Part shown: positions 1-42,196 of the stretch, piece by piece
How the letters are laid out: every line of letters starts with the position of its first letter
Position numbering within the stretch: the stretch's first letter is position 1
Position numbers and translations under genes: made by a program
Sequence record: NC_048045.1
Direction: 5' to 3' (one strand)
DNA: 64,000 nt
The notes under the pieces: model-generated
Seen by the model: only the letters and a program-made list of their open reading frames with translations
Databases searched by the model: none
What the model was told of the DNA's origin: nothing

Positions 1-163
1 CGGGATGCACCGGCGAGACGCTGGCGCGAACCCCATCCTTCTTGAAGGACCCGTAGCACGGGAACTGGATGCGTGTTTCGAATTCGCTCGGCTTGACCGA
101 GTCGGTGTCGGCCAGGGCGATCCGGAAGCGCCCGTAGAGCTTGGGCTTCTTGGTCTTGCTCAT
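1..163 (-). CDS. ATP-dependent DNA ligase, N-terminal part (runs off window start)
   Basis: Manual translation MSKTKKPKLYGRFRIALAD...QFPCYGSFKKDGVRAS contains adenylation motif I KxDGxR in an FPCY context; ATG overlaps the upstream stop. Confidence 0.75.
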   Translation of the reverse strand, partial: MSKTKKPKLYGRFRIALADTDSVKPSEFETRIQFPCYGSFKKDGVRASVSPVHP

Positions 164-621
164 CTCAATTTCCCCTCGATCAACTTGAGGCCGGGTTGGT
201 CCCGGTCCATCTGGTAGACGGTGTAGCGATCGCCGTCGAACTCGACGCTGTAGACCCGGATGCCGGCGTTGAGGCACTGCATCCACATGTCCCGCGTGCC
301 CGGCCCGCCGGGGAACGCCACGCAGACGTCGGGCTGGCTGGTCTCACGCATGCGGGTGTTGCGGCGCTTGGGCGCATCGTCGCCCTCGCCGTCCAGCGCG
401 GGGTCGACCTTGTAGACCTCGGTGGCGAACCCCCACTTCTTGGCCCAGGCCCGGCAGAGCCGGTCATAGCCCACTGCATCACCGTCGACCCAGATCATGT
501 CGCGCGGCCAGCGCAGCGCCGAGACCAGGGCCGACAGCACCAGGGTGGGCGCGACCTCGACGACGCCGACCCGGCCGCCGCAGACCACCGCCACGAACGG
601 GCGTTCAGCTTCAGGCGTCAT
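160..621 (-). CDS. SLOG superfamily protein (YspA/DUF2493-like)
   Basis: VAVVCGGR, DGDAVGYDRLCRAWA, APKRRNTRM, CVAFPGGPGTRDM motifs; start moved to MTPEAE. Confidence 0.75.
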   Translation of the reverse strand: MTPEAERPFVAVVCGGRVGVVEVAPTLVLSALVSALRWPRDMIWVDGDAVGYDRLCRAWAKKWGFATEVYKVDPALDGEGDDAPKRRNTRMRETSQPDVCVAFPGGPGTRDMWMQCLNAGIRVYSVEFDGDRYTVYQMDRDQPGLKLIEGKLR

Positions 622-2518
622 CGAAGATATCCGGGTTGAGGATTTCGGGTTCCATGTCGATGAACGAGCCGTCGAGCTTGCCGGCGCGGCCAATGCCCGG
701 CACCTGCGCGTGGTACGACATCAGGTCCATCTCGACACGGTGGCGTTGATAGTCAGCGTTCGCGTTGTAGCTGTATTTGTTGTGATACACCTTGACAGCA
801 TGCTCAATGGTGTCCGAAGGCGGCGCGTAGCTGACCCCCCGCCCACCGCTGCCGAGATAGTCGTAGCGCGGGCTATGGCGGTGCCGCCCGAACTCGCGCT
901 CGGACATCACTGCTTGTTGCTGCATCTGGTCGCGGAACTTGGTGTAGCGCGTCGACAGGGCGACGTGATAGGCGCTGACATCGGCCAGGAGCTTGATCAG
1001 GGGCTTGAACGATTTCTGCCCGTCCGAAAACTCGGTCACCGCGTCGACGAAGGCCTCCGCCGCCGCGACCGAACGTGGCGCGCCGCCCAGCCAGGACAGA
1101 AGCTGCCCAGGCTTGACGTCGTAGCAGGAGCCGTCGATCGCCCATCCCCGTTCCTGTTCGTCCCAGGTCCACTGGGCATTGTTCATCAGCGCCAGGACCC
1201 CGAACGGGTCGTAGCGATCCTTGCCGTCGCGCAGCACACCGAACCCGAACTTGGTCTTGGCCATCAGCGCCGTCCACTCGGCCATGATGCCCGCGTCGGC
1301 GTTCATCTGGCTGAGAAGCTGCTGGAGCCGCCGCACGTTCGCCGGGACGTCGGTGCTGACGCTGTCGCGCACGACCGACCCTTGGAACGTCGTCCAGGAT
1401 TCGAGGGTGCAGAACCGCTGGTGCAGGGGCTGACGGTCGTATTCCATGCGCACGTCGTCCAGGGCCGCGAACTGACCGGCGGAGCCGGGGAAGCCATAGC
1501 GATCCCGGCGGCGATAGTACATCCCGCCGCCGACCTTCATGATCGGCATGTCGTGGTAGGCTTCGAAGATGCTGCCCAGGTCGTGGTAGCCGTCGTAGTC
1601 CCGGCTCTTCTCCAGTTCGGCATCGGGGATCGCCCACAGACCCGTCCATTCGCCGTCCGGACCCCAGAGGAAGAGGTTGGCCATCGGCCCCATCTCATTC
1701 ACCGACGGCGTGCGATCCGGCAGGTAGGGCGCGAAGTGGTGAGCGTTCTTGTGGATGAAGTCGCGCACGTGAACTTCATAGCGATCGCGGGCGCGCCTTT
1801 CGCTGCGGTCGTACATCGAGTGATGAATGGAAGACATCTTGGTGTCCATGTACTTGAGGGGCGAGGCGGTCAGCCACCGCATCATGTCGCGTTGGTAGGG
1901 GCGGAGCGAAAGGCTCTGGTCCATGATCAGGTGGTCGCGCATGACCTGATCGGCGGTGCGCCCCTGGGCCTTGTGCGCGGTGATCACGAGGGTCCTCGCC
2001 ATCTCCTGAAGCCGGGACTTGCCGTGCTGGCGCGGCGCGATGTGAACCGTTCGGCAGAGGTTGTCGAGCTTGCCGCCCAGAGGGTCGGGCCACGGAGCAT
2101 CGAACTCGGTGACGTCCTGCATCATGGTCGCCTCATCGATGAGCCACGTGTTGTTCTGGGTGTCATGCCCGAAGAACTGGTGGACCGTGCCGCCGGACTT
2201 GCCGGCCGGGTCGATGCCGTAGTGGACCTTGAACGGCCCCAGGACGGCGTCGTCGACCTTGCGCTGCATCTCCTTGATGCGCTCCTCGATAGAGGGCAGG
2301 GTCGAAGCCTGCTCCAGGACCTCCATCGACAGCGGGAAGACGCTCGTCTTCCAGTCGGCCTTGACCTGGGAGGCCTTCATCACCGCGATCTGATCAGACA
2401 GCTTCTGGATCGACTTGGCCGCCTTGCCGGTCGGCGCCGGCATGACGAAGCTGGGGGCCGCAGCCGGCTCCTTGAACAGGCTGAAGACGTCGGCCGGCGG
2501 AGCGCTGACCTGCTTCAT
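611..2518 (-). CDS. Hypothetical protein (635 aa) with scattered helicase/terminase-like motifs in the N-terminal third
   Basis: Long ORF with phage codon bias; start moved to MKQVSA, just past the DUF1643 stop. Confidence 0.8.
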   Translation of the reverse strand: MKQVSAPPADVFSLFKEPAAAPSFVMPAPTGKAAKSIQKLSDQIAVMKASQVKADWKTSVFPLSMEVLEQASTLPSIEERIKEMQRKVDDAVLGPFKVHYGIDPAGKSGGTVHQFFGHDTQNNTWLIDEATMMQDVTEFDAPWPDPLGGKLDNLCRTVHIAPRQHGKSRLQEMARTLVITAHKAQGRTADQVMRDHLIMDQSLSLRPYQRDMMRWLTASPLKYMDTKMSSIHHSMYDRSERRARDRYEVHVRDFIHKNAHHFAPYLPDRTPSVNEMGPMANLFLWGPDGEWTGLWAIPDAELEKSRDYDGYHDLGSIFEAYHDMPIMKVGGGMYYRRRDRYGFPGSAGQFAALDDVRMEYDRQPLHQRFCTLESWTTFQGSVVRDSVSTDVPANVRRLQQLLSQMNADAGIMAEWTALMAKTKFGFGVLRDGKDRYDPFGVLALMNNAQWTWDEQERGWAIDGSCYDVKPGQLLSWLGGAPRSVAAAEAFVDAVTEFSDGQKSFKPLIKLLADVSAYHVALSTRYTKFRDQMQQQAVMSEREFGRHRHSPRYDYLGSGGRGVSYAPPSDTIEHAVKVYHNKYSYNANADYQRHRVEMDLMSYHAQVPGIGRAGKLDGSFIDMEPEILNPDIFDDA

Positions 2519-2528
2519 CAGGGCCGCG

Positions 2529-3161
2529 CTAGGCGCTCCTAAGAGGCTCGAAAGGCTGGTCGCCGGCGATGTAGAGGGGGTGGCGGGGATGGCCGTCTTT
2601 GGACTTGCCAAGGCACTTGACTTCGACCCCGGTGATTTCGGCTTGCTGGACCGCGCCATAGTCTTGATCCTTGAACTCCCCATGGACACCCCAGCCGGCG
2701 ATGACATCGGCCTTGGCGGTGACAGCGTACTCGAAAGCGTGTTGCAGGAACCGGGCATTGAGCGGCCCGATCGGATCAGGCGCCGCCTTCATGATCGCCG
2801 GCGATTTGGACCGGAAGGCGAAGAGGTTGACGACGATGATCCCACCATAGTCGTCGCGGCGCGCAAAGCCCATGCACCGGCGGATGGTGTTGTCGTCCAG
2901 GCGCGCGGTGGCGGTGGACGGGTTGAGCATCATGAAGATCAGGAGCGGCTTGCTCGGGTCCCAGACCCGCATGAGCATGTAGCGAAAGGTCTCGCACTGC
3001 GAGAGGATCGCGGCCTTGATCACGTCGTTCTCGATCACCACGTCGCCATAGACGCCGGTGATCTCCGGATCGTCGATCGACAGTTCAGCGGTCCCGTCCT
3101 CCAGGACCCGCAGGAAGTCGCCCCAGGAGGGCGCGTTCAGTTGTGCGGTGATCGTCGTCAT
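2529..3161 (-). CDS. DUF1643 family protein
   Basis: FRYMLMRVWD, IFMMLNPSTA, DDNTIRRCMGFARR, VVNLFAFRS, HPRHPLY. Confidence 0.85.
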   Translation of the reverse strand: MTTITAQLNAPSWGDFLRVLEDGTAELSIDDPEITGVYGDVVIENDVIKAAILSQCETFRYMLMRVWDPSKPLLIFMMLNPSTATARLDDNTIRRCMGFARRDDYGGIIVVNLFAFRSKSPAIMKAAPDPIGPLNARFLQHAFEYAVTAKADVIAGWGVHGEFKDQDYGAVQQAEITGVEVKCLGKSKDGHPRHPLYIAGDQPFEPLRSA

Positions 3162-3456: not shown

Positions 3457-3714
3457 TCAATCCTCAAGCAGGGCCTTTTGAGCCAGGGCGCGATTGTACT
3501 CCAGGAGCTTGCGAAGAGCCTTGCGGTCGCCGTCAGCCATGGCGTAGAGCCGCACCACGTCATCGTAGTCGAATTCGTTGACGAGGTCGCGCAGGTCCTG
3601 GTCCATCTTGTCGATGGTCCGAAACAGGCGCTCGCGATATTGGCGCTGCTCCTGCCGGCGGCGACGGCCGGCGAGAACACCGATCCGCTGCCGCACGCGG
3701 CGATGACGCAGCAT
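3457..3714 (-). CDS. Hypothetical protein (85 aa)
   Basis: Start MLRHRR overlaps upstream TGA; helical, charged. Confidence 0.7.
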   Translation of the reverse strand: MLRHRRVRQRIGVLAGRRRRQEQRQYRERLFRTIDKMDQDLRDLVNEFDYDDVVRLYAMADGDRKALRKLLEYNRALAQKALLED

Positions 3715-4226
3715 CAGAGCGTCTTGGGCGCGTGCCAGTCCTCGCGGTCGTCGGCATAGAGCACCGACGCCAGCGGACCGGTCCCGATGTCGCACTTGGC
3801 GGCGATCTCCACCGCCTGGGCGGCCGTGGCGCCCATGTGCAGCGCCCCCAGAGCCGACCACGTGCCCGAGCCGAAGGCGTAGAAGGGCGCACGCATCACA
3901 TAGGCCGGCGCGCCGCTCTCGAACCGCAGGCATGTGCCATCCGGGAGGATGACATAGCCGTTGGTCTCCTTGTCGGGCTTCTCAGGGCGGCCCATGTCGC
4001 AGTACGCGCCCTTGCCGCCGTCCGCCAGCCACTCGTCGAATTGCTCGGACTTGACCCAGTCGAGGAAGATTTGGACGTAGGACGACTCGCCCGCCGCGCC
4101 GAAGAGCAGCGTGCCGCCCGGTCCGGTGCGCTTGCCGATCTTGGGGACGTCCCCGCAGGGGGTCCACAGGTCCAGAACCCGCGCGTCGGCGGCCAGGGCG
4201 CCGTCTCGATAGACGATACACGTCAT
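3714..4226 (-). CDS. Ntn-hydrolase, HslV/proteasome beta-like peptidase
   Basis: N-terminal M-T-CIVYRDGALAADAR, GAAG, AFGSG..ALGAL, AVEIAAKCDIGTG; AGGAG RBS. Confidence 0.7.
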   Translation of the reverse strand: MTCIVYRDGALAADARVLDLWTPCGDVPKIGKRTGPGGTLLFGAAGESSYVQIFLDWVKSEQFDEWLADGGKGAYCDMGRPEKPDKETNGYVILPDGTCLRFESGAPAYVMRAPFYAFGSGTWSALGALHMGATAAQAVEIAAKCDIGTGPLASVLYADDREDWHAPKTL

Positions 4227-6219: not shown

Positions 6220-7650
6220 TCAGGCGATCTCATAGCCAGCGGCGACGCGCTCGCGGATTTGGTCCAGCGTCGTCGGCTCCAGCACCTTGCCGGTGTTGAA
6301 GACCTCGTCCAGCAGATCGTGCTCGACGACGTCGCCCTCGTGGACCGTGATGGTCTCGAAGCCGCCGGCCTCGTTGGTCACCAGGGCCAGCTTGCCCTTC
6401 TTGGAGACCTTGCCCGGATCGGTGATGGGGTCCTTGAAGATGTCGACCCACTCGCCGTTGATCTCTTGGGCCGACGACTTCATCGCCCACTTGTTGGTGT
6501 CGCGGTCCAGGTCGCCCGTCGCCAGACCACCGCCGGCCGCCGTCATGATGCTGTCGGGCGCGATGCCCAGGTCGCGACCCAGATAGAACGGGTCCATGTG
6601 GGTGTGCTCGTTCATGCCGTCGCCCTGGAGGACCTTGGCGTTCAGGTTGAGCACGTCCAGACCCTTGCTGTTGCGTTGGGTCCCGAAGCCGTCGGCCATG
6701 ATCTTGAGCACCGGCGGGATGACCTCGCCCAGCTTGCCGCTATCGGGACGGCAGACGATCGTGATGTTCTTGTTGGCGATCAGGTCCTTGAACTTCACCA
6801 GCTTGCGGGTGAACTCGAAGATGTTCCAGGTGTCGCCGACCAGCGAGACGATCGAACCAGCCGGCGCCCGGTTCAGGCAGTGCTCGATGTATTCGTCGTC
6901 GTTGTCGCGCCCGAACGAGCAGGAGATCGAGTGCTCGGTGGCCAGCACCGAGTAGGCCGACATCTCGCTGAAGTAGTTGATGTTCGCCGCGCGCACGGCC
7001 GGGACGTTGTCCGAGCCCTGGAAGTGGTAGAGGTGCGCGATGCCGGCCAGGACCGAGTGATCATAGCCCATGGTGCCGCGCGAGGAGAAGTCCAGGAAAG
7101 CGAACGGCGACATCGGCGTGTCGCTGGTGAGGTCCCAGAAGCTCTTGATCCGCGACGCGATGTTGTTGACGCGCGCGGCGATCGTCGAGGCCGTCCAGAC
7201 GTCGCGCAGGATCATGGTCTCGAAGTACGAGGTCAGCCAGGGCAGGCGCGGGTCGAGGTTCTCGACGCTGATCAGGGCGTTCTTGACCGGGATCATCATG
7301 CCCTCGGGCACGGCCTTGATGCGCAGCGGCAGGTAGCCGCCGTACTCGTTCAGGATGATCTCCCAGCCGTCGCGGTTGAACGGCAGGCCGTGGGCCGGCA
7401 CGAACACGGCCATCTCGTCGATGTCGGCGCGGGTGATCGGCTTGCAGAGCTTCTGGAAGAGCAGGCGCTGGAACGCGGCCAGCATCACCTTGGGGTAACG
7501 CCCGCCCCGGCTCTCGATGTAGCTGTAGACGGTGGTGCAGCCGTCGCGATAGAGCACCCAGTGCCCCAGCTTGTAGCTGTCGGTGTCGGCGATCAGGTTG
7601 TAGGTCTCGACGGGAGCGACCCCGTCCCATTTGGCGATGTCGAAGGCCAT
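6220..7650 (-). CDS. nadV: Nicotinamide phosphoribosyltransferase (NAMPT)
   Basis: DTDSYKLGH, VYSYIESRGG, DFSSRG, AHLYHFQGSD, ATEHS, RPDSG, LQGDG, GKVSKKGKL. Confidence 0.93.
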   Translation of the reverse strand: MAFDIAKWDGVAPVETYNLIADTDSYKLGHWVLYRDGCTTVYSYIESRGGRYPKVMLAAFQRLLFQKLCKPITRADIDEMAVFVPAHGLPFNRDGWEIILNEYGGYLPLRIKAVPEGMMIPVKNALISVENLDPRLPWLTSYFETMILRDVWTASTIAARVNNIASRIKSFWDLTSDTPMSPFAFLDFSSRGTMGYDHSVLAGIAHLYHFQGSDNVPAVRAANINYFSEMSAYSVLATEHSISCSFGRDNDDEYIEHCLNRAPAGSIVSLVGDTWNIFEFTRKLVKFKDLIANKNITIVCRPDSGKLGEVIPPVLKIMADGFGTQRNSKGLDVLNLNAKVLQGDGMNEHTHMDPFYLGRDLGIAPDSIMTAAGGGLATGDLDRDTNKWAMKSSAQEINGEWVDIFKDPITDPGKVSKKGKLALVTNEAGGFETITVHEGDVVEHDLLDEVFNTGKVLEPTTLDQIRERVAAGYEIA

Positions 7651-7660
7651 GATGTCCCCT

Positions 7661-8884
7661 TTATGCGTTGAGGCTGAGCATGCGGTCCACGATGAAGGCG
7701 TGGTCCTCGAAGGTGTTGGACGGGTCGATCTCGGAGATCGGGTCCCAGTCGGCGGCGGCGGCGTCGTCGTGCCCCTTGACCACCGGCAGGCTCAGGCCCA
7801 GCGCCGGCGGCGGGATGAGGAAGTGGAAAGCGGTCGAGATGATGTGGGCGCGCCGCGAGCGGTGCGGATCGTCAAAGACCTGGGGCTCGCCGACCAGGAA
7901 GCGGCGAAGCTCCTCCATGGCCTTGACCACGTAGCCCGGCGCGGCCGGCGGGCGCAGGCCCAGCTTCTCGGCCTGCTTGCAGGCGGCGAGCCAGTGGACG
8001 AAGTTGGGATAGTCCCGCTCGGAAATGAACAGCGCGGTCTCTTCGATGATCTCGCGCAGGCAGTTGGCCAGCAGCGAGGAGCCGGCGTTGACGAAGCCGC
8101 CGGGCAGGGCCTTCATGCCCAGCCCCTCGGCGCCGCCGCGCTCGATCCGCAGAACGTGACCGGCGCACTCGACCACGCCGTCGACGGCCAGGAACGGACC
8201 CGGCCCCCAGCGTTCGCGGTAGGCGTCCTCGGCCTTCTTCTGGTCGAGCAGGTAGGCGTAGACCTTCTTGTCGCGGAACCGCTCCAGGAAGTCGATGGTG
8301 CTCGGATAGAGCAGATCGGTCCAGGCATGGCCCCGGTCGCTCCAGGCGGTGTCGCGGAAGTTGACCCCGCCGGCGAAGTAGGCTTGACGCAGAGCCGTGG
8401 CGTTGACGCCGTTGTCCTCGACCGGGGTATAGGGCCATTGCGGGAACCAAGTCAGGTATTCGCTGGTGGCGTCGCGGACGTTGCCGATCAGGGTGACGCG
8501 CGGGCGCAGCACCTTGGTGGCGTTCTTGACGTGCTGCTGGACCTGGGCGATCCACTCGTTCTTGCCATAGGGGCCGGTGTCGTTGAGCGCGATCACCTCG
8601 GTGTTCGACAGGTGATGCAGGATGCGCTCGCCGGTGATCTCGACATCGCTATCTTCGACCTCCTCGCGGGCCAGATCGCTGAGCCCGTTGAGGATCATCT
8701 CCTTGCGTTCCTCGAACACGAAGGGATTGCGCGTGTCGCGGGCGAGGTTGGCCGAGCCGATGAACCAGAGGACCTTGCGGGCCTTCTTGCGCGCCGCCTG
8801 ATACAGGCGGAAGTGGCCGAGCTTGGTCGGCATTTGCGCCCGCGTGATCAGCACCGCGATGTCGTACTCGAAATCCACCATCAC
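7661..8884 (-). CDS. nadM: Bifunctional NMN adenylyltransferase / Nudix hydrolase
   Basis: TKLGH (HxGH-like), GSANLARDTRNPFVFEER, VNATALR, ALPGGFV..REIIEET, FEDHAFIV. Confidence 0.9.
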   Translation of the reverse strand: MMVDFEYDIAVLITRAQMPTKLGHFRLYQAARKKARKVLWFIGSANLARDTRNPFVFEERKEMILNGLSDLAREEVEDSDVEITGERILHHLSNTEVIALNDTGPYGKNEWIAQVQQHVKNATKVLRPRVTLIGNVRDATSEYLTWFPQWPYTPVEDNGVNATALRQAYFAGGVNFRDTAWSDRGHAWTDLLYPSTIDFLERFRDKKVYAYLLDQKKAEDAYRERWGPGPFLAVDGVVECAGHVLRIERGGAEGLGMKALPGGFVNAGSSLLANCLREIIEETALFISERDYPNFVHWLAACKQAEKLGLRPPAAPGYVVKAMEELRRFLVGEPQVFDDPHRSRRAHIISTAFHFLIPPPALGLSLPVVKGHDDAAAADWDPISEIDPSNTFEDHAFIVDRMLSLNA

Positions 8885-39562: not shown

Positions 39563-40027
39563 CTATTCGCTCGGAATGACGGACGCCGGGGCGTCCAGGT
39601 CGAAGGTCTCGCCCTCATCGGTGAGGGCGAAGGTGGCGTAGCCGTCAGGGCTCTTGACCATGGACAGCATCTTGATCAGGCCGTGCTTCTCCAGCGCCTG
39701 GGCGGCGGGATAGTCGGCGTGCTGGTAGAAGACGTTGAGCCGCCCGCCGTTACCCAGGATGCGCACGCTGCGCAGCAACATGGCCTCTTGCTCGCTCAAG
39801 CCCAGCGTACCCTTGATCCGCACGCGGGCCAGATGCACGTCGATCACATGCGTTTGGCCCTCATGCTCGAACTCGATGATCGCCAGCGGCCCGAACGAGC
39901 CGTTGGTCACCGCCAGGATCACGCCCTCGAACTCGGTCGTCTTGCGGGCGGTGATCGGGACGTAGTAGTCGAAGAACACGGTCTTGCCCTTCATCACGTG
40001 GTGGGCCTGGGGCGCGACAGTGCTCAT
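39563..40027 (-). CDS. Hypothetical protein, possible C-terminal winged helix
   Basis: AQALEKHGLIKM..FALTDEG. Confidence 0.7.
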   Translation of the reverse strand: MSTVAPQAHHVMKGKTVFFDYYVPITARKTTEFEGVILAVTNGSFGPLAIIEFEHEGQTHVIDVHLARVRIKGTLGLSEQEAMLLRSVRILGNGGRLNVFYQHADYPAAQALEKHGLIKMLSMVKSPDGYATFALTDEGETFDLDAPASVIPSE

Positions 40028-40275
40028 GTTGTGGAGTCCTTCTTGCGGGCGGTGTAGTGGAACTCGTCGTGCATGCGCCCGTCCAAGGTGATCTCGTAGC
40101 CGGGACCCAGTTCAGCCAGGATGCGCGCCTCGATCTCGGCGAAGTCGATGTTGGCCATCGCACGCTCGGCCGCCGCCGCCTGCTCCAGAAAGCTGCTCCT
40201 GATCTTGGCGCCGGCCTCGGTACGGATCGGGATGTTCTGGATGGGTGGCTCGGACTTGGACAGGCGCTCGGTCAT
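40024..40275 (-). CDS. Small protein (83 aa) carrying DNA polymerase A motif A- and C-like peptides
   Basis: ANIDFAEIEARILAELG and GRMHDEFHY; start MTERLS coupled to the gcrA stop. Confidence 0.7.
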   Translation of the reverse strand: MTERLSKSEPPIQNIPIRTEAGAKIRSSFLEQAAAAERAMANIDFAEIEARILAELGPGYEITLDGRMHDEFHYTARKKDSTT

Positions 40276-40820
40276 CAAGCCCTCTTTTTCTTGCCGACGT
40301 GCGAGGGGCGCGTGGCGGCCTTGTAGACGAATGGGCGATAGGCCATGCGGTGGTGGTCGATGCAGTAGACGCCCTGCGCGGTGCGGCACCCGCAATGGCC
40401 GAAGTTCTGGTCGGTCGGGTCGCCGTAGGGCCAGCGGCACATCCCGCGCCCCAGGCTCAGGGTGGGGACGACAGTCTCGGGACGCACCGGGATCGGCGCC
40501 TGCCCCTCGGGGACCAGTTCGATCTTGGGCTTCGAAGGCGTTTCGGCCTTGGGCTTGGCGGCTTTCTTGGGCTTGGCGACCTTGACCTTCTTGATCTGGA
40601 TGCCGTAGCCGCGCGTTTTCTTGCGGCGCTCCTGGAGCGGCAAGACCTTGTCGCCCAGTTCGCCCTTCTGGCGCAGGCGATCGCCCATGCCGCAGACGGC
40701 GCTCTTGCTGCGCGGCTCGCGTAGCATTTCCCCGATCTGCTTGGTCCCGACAGGCTCGGCCCAGAGCTTCTTGAGCAGGGCGATGTCCTCGGCCAGCCAG
40801 TCCGACTTACGCTTCTTCAC
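40275..40820 (-). CDS. gcrA: GcrA-like cell-cycle regulator
   Basis: W..EDIALLKKLWAE...QIGEML..SKSAVCG..RL; CRWPYGDP..FGHCG...YCIDHHRMAY. Confidence 0.92.
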   Translation of the reverse strand: MKKRKSDWLAEDIALLKKLWAEPVGTKQIGEMLREPRSKSAVCGMGDRLRQKGELGDKVLPLQERRKKTRGYGIQIKKVKVAKPKKAAKPKAETPSKPKIELVPEGQAPIPVRPETVVPTLSLGRGMCRWPYGDPTDQNFGHCGCRTAQGVYCIDHHRMAYRPFVYKAATRPSHVGKKKRA

Positions 40821-40828
40821 CTTGAACG

Positions 40829-41014
40829 CTACTCCTGTTTTGCCTTGGCGGGGCGCCGGCGGCTCGTGGGATGGGGGACGAACACCAGGGCGACGGTCGA
40901 GCCGCCGGTGTAAAAGGTCCGGCGGCTATAGAGCCAACCGCCCTCGACTTCCAGGCGATCGGTGACTTGCCCGTCCGCTTCGTCGACTTTTTCCCATTTC
41001 GTCTTCTTGGCCAT
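40829..41014 (-). CDS. Hypothetical protein (61 aa)
   Basis: Start MAKKTK; TDRLEVEGGWLY..ALVFVP. Confidence 0.7.
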   Translation of the reverse strand: MAKKTKWEKVDEADGQVTDRLEVEGGWLYSRRTFYTGGSTVALVFVPHPTSRRRPAKAKQE

Positions 41015-41017
41015 GTG

Positions 41018-41065
41018 CCCCTCGAAATTCGCCGGCACCCTAGAGACGCGCCGATGTGTTGACAA
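41018..41065 (-). promoter_or_regulatory. Leftward promoter of the divergent region (gcrA operon)
   Basis: TTGTCA-N17-TAGGGT; GAGGGG RBS. Confidence 0.55.
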
Positions 41066-41079
41066 GCGCAAAATAGCTC

Positions 41080-41145
41080 TGGCTGGCGAGTGTTGACAAG
41101 GAGGCGGTGGTCCCTTAGAAGGGCGGCGACGACAACGAAAGGAGG
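41080..41145 (+). promoter_or_regulatory. Phage promoter family member (first rightward)
   Basis: TGGCT-N6-TGTTGACA-N17-TAGAAG-N6-GACGACAAC-GGAGG. Confidence 0.85.
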
Positions 41146-41150
41146 CGCCG

Positions 41151-41450
41151 ATGCGCTACGTTCTGGAGTACATGGACTGCGACGACCAGATCGTCCAGGT
41201 CGACTTCGAGGCCGCCACCCGCGCCTCGGCGATCGCCAAGGCCAAGCGCCTCTTCGTGAAGGCGGTCGAGGCCAGCGGTCGGTCGATCTTCACCGGCTAT
41301 ATGTTCGAGGACCACTCGATCACCATGAAGGTGAAGCTGGTCCCGTTCGGCACCCTGAGCCGCTACCTGGGTCTGGGCAAGGTCACCGTCGCCAACATCG
41401 CGTTCGACGACCGCGACGCCAAGATCGCCCGCCAGGACATGGCCGCATGA
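41151..41450 (+). CDS. Hypothetical protein
   Basis: GGAGG RBS. Confidence 0.75.
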   Translation: MRYVLEYMDCDDQIVQVDFEAATRASAIAKAKRLFVKAVEASGRSIFTGYMFEDHSITMKVKLVPFGTLSRYLGLGKVTVANIAFDDRDAKIARQDMAA

Positions 41451-41659
41451 TCAGGGTCGAGGACGTCAAGCCCGGCTTCATCTATCGCGGCGGCAAGGGC
41501 GGCGCCCTGCGCCAAGTGGTCAGCTACGGCGCCCACGAGGGCTTTGTCTGCTGGGCCAACCCGCACGATCGCCTGCCCTATGGCGGGTTCCTCACCACCA
41601 CCTGCACCAGCCGGGCGTCGTTCGCCCGCTGGGCCGACAAGATCGAGGAAGAGGTTTGA
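41447..41659 (+). CDS. Hypothetical protein
   Basis: Start MIRVED; ATGA overlap. Confidence 0.7.
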   Translation: MIRVEDVKPGFIYRGGKGGALRQVVSYGAHEGFVCWANPHDRLPYGGFLTTTCTSRASFARWADKIEEEV

Positions 41660-41946
41660 TCACCACCTTCCTACGCTGCACCCACCGCGACGCCGAGGGG
41701 CGTCGGTACCTGGAGTTCCGCGAGCCAGACCTCGTCCAGCGTCTCTATGTGCGCAAGCCGGCCGACGATTGGACCCAGGGCTACCCTATCGTCCTGGAGG
41801 ACTTCTACAGTGGCTCGCCCGGCGGCAAGACCCTCTTCCAGGCCGGCAAGCGCCGGGGCTGCGGCATCGGAGCGTTCTTTCGCGCCTACCCCGAGGTCTA
41901 CAGCCTCATCGTTTTGCGCCAGGAGGCACTCGATGCCCAGGTCTAA
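41656..41946 (+). CDS. Hypothetical protein
   Basis: TTGA overlap. Confidence 0.65.
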   Translation: MITTFLRCTHRDAEGRRYLEFREPDLVQRLYVRKPADDWTQGYPIVLEDFYSGSPGGKTLFQAGKRRGCGIGAFFRAYPEVYSLIVLRQEALDAQV

Positions 41947-42196
41947 GCGCCCCAACCTGCCGATCACCGTCGCCGACCTCAAGGCGTTCCTGGAGAAGTT
42001 CCCGGACGACATGAAGGTCGGCATCCGCGCCGGCGGCGGACGCTTCACTGGCTTCACCGAGGTCGAGGTCAAGAACCTCACCTCCTACGGCGCCGAGAAG
42101 GATCGCCTGACCATGGAGACCTCTCGCGGGGCCAACATCTTCAAAGGCTACAAGGGCAAGATTTCCGAGCCCTTCGACGCCCTGATCTTCGACTAG
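41933..42196 (+). CDS. Hypothetical protein
   Basis: Start MPRSKR with GGAGG RBS; ITVADLKAFLEKFPDDMKV. Confidence 0.7.
   Translation: MPRSKRPNLPITVADLKAFLEKFPDDMKVGIRAGGGRFTGFTEVEVKNLTSYGAEKDRLTMETSRGANIFKGYKGKISEPFDALIFD

Follow-up and report, generated by a model that had tools for sequence, protein, structure and literature searches.

The window analysed here comprises 64,000 nucleotides of the genome of Caulobacter phage CcrBL10 (Poindextervirus, Dolichocephalovirinae; NC_048045.1 bases 124001–188000). It carries HOT99_gp267 (gp267), a gene whose product of 635 amino acids contains an odd string of nucleoside triphosphatase (NTPase) motifs in its first part. Our comparisons lead us, on balance and with considerable reserve, to regard the N-terminus of gp267 as a helicase-derived, ATPase-dead remnant, carried on a conserved protein that has an accessory role in a DNA-metabolism cassette centred on a ligase. 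The core of the protein (residues ~236–545) would represent a phage protein family without a known fold, always found alongside a DUF1643 protein, a SLOG-like protein and an ATP-dependent DNA ligase. The first ~225 residues, present in this form in phiCbK-like phages, would be a Dda/RecD-like superfamily 1B (SF1B) helicase that has shrunk to about half its length. Islands matching conserved helicase motifs would have survived this process, while the segments between them were deleted or diverged, and the ATP-binding Walker A would be left without a counterpart at its position in the remnant. A protein conserved throughout the phiCbK-like Caulobacter phages and named only 'hypothetical' thereby receives a first, partial annotation, and the case suggests that a single helicase can leave an odd string of NTPase motifs as its fossil.

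Similarity to a Dda/RecD-like helicase

The phage's own NTPases were taken from the CcrBL10 record as a comparison set. By their Pfam matches, they include a Dda/RecD-like SF1B helicase of 444 residues, HOT99_gp304 (gp304; AAA_30 at residues 12–243, UvrD_C_2 at residues 396–442), a large terminase with an intein (Terminase_6C) and an SNF2-type helicase. Among these, only the Dda-like helicase stands out against gp267. The N-terminal 230 residues of six gp267 orthologues were combined into a query profile and compared by hhalign with a profile of 116 helicase sequences, made up of 115 collected Dda-like helicases and the phage's own. The profiles matched with a probability of 89.7, P = 1.9e-6 and a score of 50.3. 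By comparison, 150 column shuffles gave a mean score of 15.9 (standard deviation 2.8, maximum 25.0) and the reversed template scored 14.3. As negative controls, the N-termini of another 17 proteins from the wider gp267 family remained at the null level, with scores of 11–20.5. Under shuffle, reversal and family controls alike, the profile–profile similarity of the gp267 N-terminus to SF1B helicases is significant, the pattern that common descent would leave. A first-pass annotation of the sequence had proposed that the region carries sequence related to a replication helicase, and the hhalign P value bears this out.

The similarity contains two scoring pieces that do not overlap and stand in helicase order, the first near helicase motif Ia, the second at the UvrD_C_2 end. 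Residues 1–60 of gp267, aligned alone with helicase residues 21–101, scored 41.8 (P = 1.7e-6; null 11.4 ± 2.0, maximum 18.2), and residues 160–226, aligned alone with helicase residues 378–439, scored 32.2 (P = 1.7e-4; null 13.6 ± 2.8, maximum 20.0). The Shapirovirus rows of the alignment, taken by themselves, reached 36.8 against a null maximum of 27.8. When the N-termini were compared with the helicase profile as single sequences, those of BL10, Rogue and Swift scored 32–44 and that of BL57 scored 21.7. The best Pfam matches of the N-terminus, both below threshold, were to AAA_19 (E = 0.12) and Viral_helicase1 (E = 0.15, residues 160–192), which are SF1 helicase families.

Pairwise comparisons gave a BLASTP match between the Karma orthologue of gp267 and the Ccr2 helicase, a Shapirovirus pair, that reaches beyond the motif (32% identity over 68 residues, E = 7e-4). 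In CcrBL10, the exact 8-mer APTGKAAK is common to gp267 and gp304 (residues 58–65 of the latter); by itself it is not significant (BLAST E = 0.39 against five proteins). Helicase residues 399–439 are matched by gp267 from ITAHKAQG to RWL (27% identity over 48 residues by BLASTP). The BLAST matches of gp267 pieces to gp304 are each weak on their own.

According to the first-pass annotation, this region is a mixture of terminase, superfamily 2 (SF2) and RecD motifs, six in number, whose order fits no single NTPase and whose spacing is 10–35 residues throughout. All six strings are indeed present in the claimed order within the open reading frame, at gp267 residues 24–32, 100–106, 125–133, 160–168, 179–190 and 205–216 (window 1871–2449), but the gaps between them measure 67, 18, 26, 10 and 14 residues. 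They follow one another as in the phage's own Dda/RecD-like SF1B helicase, onto which they map in ascending sequence at residues 54–62, 155–161, 169–177, 224–229, 399–410 and 421–429. In place of a mixture, one family, the Dda/RecD-like SF1B helicases, covers the significant similarity colinearly. The first string, FVMPAPTGK, had been labelled as a Walker A; because an A follows its G-K, it is not one, and it corresponds to the residues that immediately follow the helicase Walker A. In the third string, L-I-D-E-A aligns to V-V-D-E-A of the helicase Walker B with four of nine residues identical; the pair is reordered in Shapiroviruses, and the surrounding piece is marginal alone.

Much of the helicase is missing from gp267. 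The helicase Walker A (motif I, residues 30–37) has no aligned counterpart, and the matches that gp267 itself has to the Walker A pattern lie at non-homologous positions. The two RecA-like domains of about 400 residues with motifs I–VI are not present either: the gp267 region is ~225 residues long, and helicase residues ~230–395 have no counterpart in it. Judged from its sequence, the remnant would be unable to hydrolyse ATP or to translocate on DNA. In SF1 helicases, single-stranded DNA is contacted by the motifs adjacent to Walker A and by those of the second RecA-like domain. Because motifs of this kind make such contacts, binding of DNA or of a partner protein would be the most likely activity of the remnant, if it is still active at all. 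The main function of gp267 beside the ligase cassette is probably carried by the core and the acidic tail.

Several observations weigh against a helicase origin. The middle piece (residues 61–159) is marginal alone (24.2 versus a null maximum of 21.0), and the second and fourth motifs (YGIDPAG and IAPRQHGKS) map weakly onto the helicase. None of the curated helicase thresholds (AAA_30, AAA_19, UvrD_C_2) is reached by gp267, which scores ~12 bits in HMMER, and nearly all six motifs are missing from BL57, the most divergent orthologue. The G-I-D-P-A-G strand is characteristic of the wider protein family and not only of its phiCbK-like members: a G/A-I/V-D-P/R-A motif occurs near the N-terminus of the relatives from Brevundimonas phage Bajun and metagenomic contig L014 and of the proteins P0031, P0032, P0034 and P0046, none of which is helicase-like. 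The helicase-like pieces flank this family-specific strand, and a simple end-to-end gene fusion therefore does not describe the protein. Lastly, in an AlphaFold2 model of full gp267 (21 sequences), the predicted local distance difference test (pLDDT) was below 50 at residues 1–29, 50–77, 91–240, 332–360 and 546–635. For residues 91–240 this agrees with the disorder that had been expected in the motif region; since the N-terminal alignment is only 3–4 sequences deep, however, low pLDDT is no proof of disorder. An assignment of G-I-D-P-A-G to the helicase Walker B strand was considered and found no support: the best local alignment falls there, with a score within the null range.

Some of these points would also suit an alternative in which the N-terminus is a lineage-specific, largely flexible extension, the islands serve as short binding motifs of its own or form a small domain, and the likeness to helicases is convergent or coincidental. 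We consider this unlikely, although a number of observations agree with it. A search of 5.8 billion proteins with the N-terminal profile returned no match at E ≤ 0.1, and no homologue of the region was found outside phiCbK-like phages. Neither the whole protein nor the N-terminal alignment had a threshold-level match in Pfam, NCBIfam, PADLOC or PDB sequences. The low AlphaFold2 confidence, the presence of G-I-D-P-A-G in Bajun and L014 without helicase similarity, and the lack of significance of the lone 8-mer point in the same direction. Against coincidence stand the two independent colinear segments, both of which beat every shuffle, the span of 68 residues over which the Shapirovirus pair is similar, and the 17 other family N-termini that stay at the null level. 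A weak precomputed match of one gp267 relative to DUF8296 was not reproduced in repeat scans and was discarded.

Conservation of the motif islands and further alternatives

Conservation was assessed in an alignment of eight gp267 orthologues from three lineages. Identity to the distant orthologues was 45% in the six motif blocks versus 15% in the linkers, a difference reached by random blocks of equal sizes in ~1/1000 trials (permutation p about 0.001). The blocks had been picked blind to any homologue. The check on homologues that the first-pass annotation had suggested, whether motifs are conserved over linkers, thus came out in its favour for every block but ITAHKAQGRTAD, whose conservation is limited to the sister phage CcrRogue. 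Its proposed check on chance frequency gave a similar answer: the PROSITE Walker A pattern occurs twice in gp267 (residues 101–108 and 161–168), compared with 0.038 expected from composition. Because the Walker A matches exceed expectation and the blocks are conserved above the linkers, the six motifs are not chance decoration; they are real, conserved islands. The region is predicted at low confidence and its motifs are conserved above their flanks, so that neither of the two results that would have counted against the first-pass proposal, an ordinary single domain or uniform conservation, was found. What had been observed in the letters therefore holds for the strings, their order and their conservation, but not for the spacing, the terminase labels or the notion that no single NTPase has this order. 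Between BL10 and Rogue, the ratio of nonsynonymous to synonymous substitution rates (dN/dS) is 0.39 in the N-terminus, 0.23 in the core and 0.34 in the linker, and the acidic tail is without nonsynonymous change. With a dN/dS of 0.39 against 0.23 in the core, the N-terminal region is constrained but relaxed.

The fourth island deserves separate consideration. Its A-P-R-Q-x-G-K-S is kept in 8/8 orthologues and has no convincing helicase or terminase counterpart, which raises the alternative of a functional, non-canonical nucleotide-binding module centred on this loop. The Walker A pattern is matched at the site in all eight orthologues, including BL57, and the structural model places a short strand before the loop (E159–160) and a helix after it (H170–184). 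We nevertheless regard such a module as improbable. No conserved acidic Walker B strand follows the loop, no P-loop family was detected at any threshold, pLDDT at the loop is about 30–40, and ~4% of proteins with the composition of gp267 match the pattern by chance.

The first-pass annotation had gone further and proposed that the protein is a decoy for Avs immune sensors. Narrowed to what the comparisons leave, this idea would state that the islands, kept in a flexible scaffold, imitate the phage's Dda-like helicase and titrate a host factor, partner or immune sensor that recognises the helicase, so that the region would be a molecular mimic and not a dead relic. This appears very improbable, the more so as the motifs that survive in gp267 line the interior cleft of helicases and not their surface. 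The conservation of islands with linkers free to vary, the exact 8-mer common to the region and the phage's own helicase, and the location of a NARP2-like NAD+-salvage counter-defence pair about 4 kb away would all be compatible with mimicry. On the other side, the region has no similarity to any terminase, there is no PADLOC match in the cassette, and the gene belongs to a cassette of DNA-repair type that relatives without the helicase-like region also keep. Known targets of Avs sensors include a helicase/RecA-type ATPase (PMC13581612), but the sensors are described as recognising whole folds via extended interfaces and not short motifs (PMC13581612), so that isolated motifs could not imitate what is recognised. 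Together with the missing terminase similarity, this leaves the Avs-decoy mechanism unsupported.

Recent micro-recombination with the helicase gene, also proposed, was rejected on DNA comparison: the shared 8-mer differs at 3/24 bases and nothing else matches the helicase gene, and therefore no recent exchange took place. Of the first-pass interpretation, helicase-related sequence, conserved islands and a region of low confidence are supported, whereas the mixture of motifs, recent recombination and the Avs decoy are not.

The ligase cassette and its surroundings

The gp267 sequence is identical to CcrBL10 124611–126518 (100% identity), and orthologues are present in all phiCbK-like phages examined. 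Its full-length profile match to PHROG 12055, a group listed with function unknown, has E = 1.7e-210 and covers residues 81–715 of a long open reading frame of 715 residues, which is the entire annotated protein. The frame is open for 80 more codons upstream (window 2519–2758, minus strand), to an ATG at 2758. This stretch overlaps the end of the DUF1643 gene and is not common to the orthologues, which begin at the annotated codon. The parts of gp267 and the neighbouring genes are listed in Table 1.

Table 1. Parts of gp267 and adjoining genes, in window coordinates.
Feature	Window position	Strand	Basis
HOT99_gp267 coding sequence, 635 amino acids and stop	611..2518	−	annotated hypothetical protein; PHROG 12055
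Putative N-terminal pseudo-helicase region, residues 1–226, with all six motifs	1841..2518	−	hhalign P = 1.9e-6
Residues 7–60, like helicase residues 21–101 (after Walker A, including APTGKAAK)	2339..2500	−	hhalign, 8-mer, BLASTP
Residues 96–118, G-I-D-P-A-G strand and hairpin, wider-family motif	2165..2233	−	distant relatives
WLIDEATMM, residues 125–133, aligned to helicase Walker B strand 169–177	2120..2146	−	4/9 identical
APRQHGKS, residues 161–168, Walker A pattern match, not at helicase Walker A position	2015..2038	−	8/8 orthologues
Residues 171–226, like helicase residues 378–439 (UvrD_C_2 part)	1841..2008	−	hhalign score 32.2
Conserved core, residues 236–545, with W-G-P-x-G-E-W-T-G and K-F-G-x-G-V-L-R-D blocks	884..1813	−	46 representative homologues
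Linker, residues 546–615, poorly conserved, low predicted confidence	674..883	−	7–13% identity to distant orthologues
Acidic C-terminal tail, residues 616–635, conserved	614..673	−	identical in CcrRogue; 50–55% in distant orthologues
DUF1643 protein, upstream neighbour	2529..3161	−	Pfam PF07799, E = 1e-40
SLOG-like protein, record label 'GTP-binding domain', downstream neighbour	160..594	−	Pfam YAcAr/SLOG E = 8e-5, under curated cut-off
ATP-dependent DNA ligase, gene start, cut by window edge	1..163	−	

The core was modelled with far greater confidence than the N-terminus: for residues 236–550 with 47 sequences, AlphaFold2 gave a mean pLDDT of 86 and a predicted template modelling score (pTM) of 0.83. 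A Foldseek search of this model against the PDB found no relative (best E 1.3). The model of full gp267 had no meaningful match in the PDB and BFVD, the sole match being an uncharacterised stand-alone domain of phage CcrPW. The last ~160 residues recur in many phages as a protein on their own. The acidic tail is specific to phiCbK-like orthologues; most stand-alone or shorter relatives of gp267 have a basic, aromatic-rich tail in its place.

The order DUF1643 – gp267 – SLOG-like – ATP-dependent DNA ligase was found in every relative examined, and in L012, L014 and L015 as in CcrBL10 a YqeY/GatB-like gene follows. In Bajun and L014, the central protein is split into two adjacent genes (379 + 187 and 311 + 183 residues, respectively). 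The helicase-like N-terminus is confined to the phiCbK-like lineage, and the cassette is kept even where this region is absent. With a central protein that is confidently folded yet without a solved relative, the cassette of DUF1643, gp267, SLOG-like protein and DNA ligase poses more of a question than the motifs do. For the SLOG-like gene at window 160–594, the weak YAcAr/SLOG match is the sole family signal, and it recurs in two metagenomic counterparts.

Further features were noted around the cassette and in the rest of the record. On the minus strand, about 4 kb upstream of gp267, a nicotinamide phosphoribosyltransferase (NAMPT) gene (window 6220–7650) adjoins an NMN adenylyltransferase/Nudix gene (window 7661–8878). 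This gene pair corresponds to the described NAD+ reconstitution pathway NARP2, which acts in counter-defence; metagenomic relatives likewise carry it upstream of the cassette. The gene at window 3714–4226 (minus strand) is annotated as 'peptidase HslV family' and has no Pfam match at E ≤ 0.01. Outside the window, at 209272–212004 of the CcrBL10 record, lies the gene for the large terminase of 910 residues, whose intein gives Intein_splicing, LAGLIDADG_3 and Hom_end_hint matches between about residues 135 and 471. At window positions of about 40000–42000, the cumulative GC skew peaks and the AT skew changes sign, consistent with a switch of the predominant coding strand.

Comparison with known systems

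No likeness to phage anti-defence decoys or sponges was demonstrated, the only link being the proximity of the NAD+-salvage pair. There is no family match to them, and Avs recognition is fold-based, whereas the gp267 region is too short for such a fold. Terminase large subunits combine an ATPase with an RNase H-like nuclease, and the likeness of gp267 to them consists of two short strings only, G-I-D-P-A-G and R-Q-x-G-K-S. No Pfam terminase family matched gp267 at E ≤ 10, and the large terminase subunit of the phage itself (TerL) showed no similarity in profile or pairwise comparisons; nor did the phage's small terminase subunit (TerS), PhoH or SNF2-type helicase. The terminase labels of the first-pass annotation were accordingly dropped.

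RecC of the RecBCD complex is an inactivated, helicase-derived protein: its ATPase motifs are gone, and it serves a role other than that of a motor. With it, the proposed remnant would share helicase-derived sequence minus the ATPase motifs. RecC, however, retains the complete helicase fold, while the gp267 region is of half length with no fold predicted, and PDB sequence searches with gp267 returned no match to RecC.

The wider family of PHROG 12055 comprises stand-alone proteins of ~175 residues and proteins of 330–470 residues from Dolichocephalovirinae-like phages. These have the same core (residues 236–545) as gp267 and the same DUF1643 – X – SLOG-like – ligase order, but the helicase-like N-terminus and the acidic tail are found in phiCbK-like members only. 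The Dda/RecD-like SF1B helicases, defined by AAA_30 and UvrD_C_2 and represented in this phage by gp304, differ from the gp267 N-terminus in length (444 versus ~225 residues), and gp267 lacks the accessory domains as well as most of the second RecA-like domain. The gp267 region has no homologous Walker A, stays below the curated thresholds and is fused to an unrelated core. In profile, in its colinear motifs, in the identical 8-mer and in its UvrD_C_2 end, it is nevertheless these helicases that it resembles.

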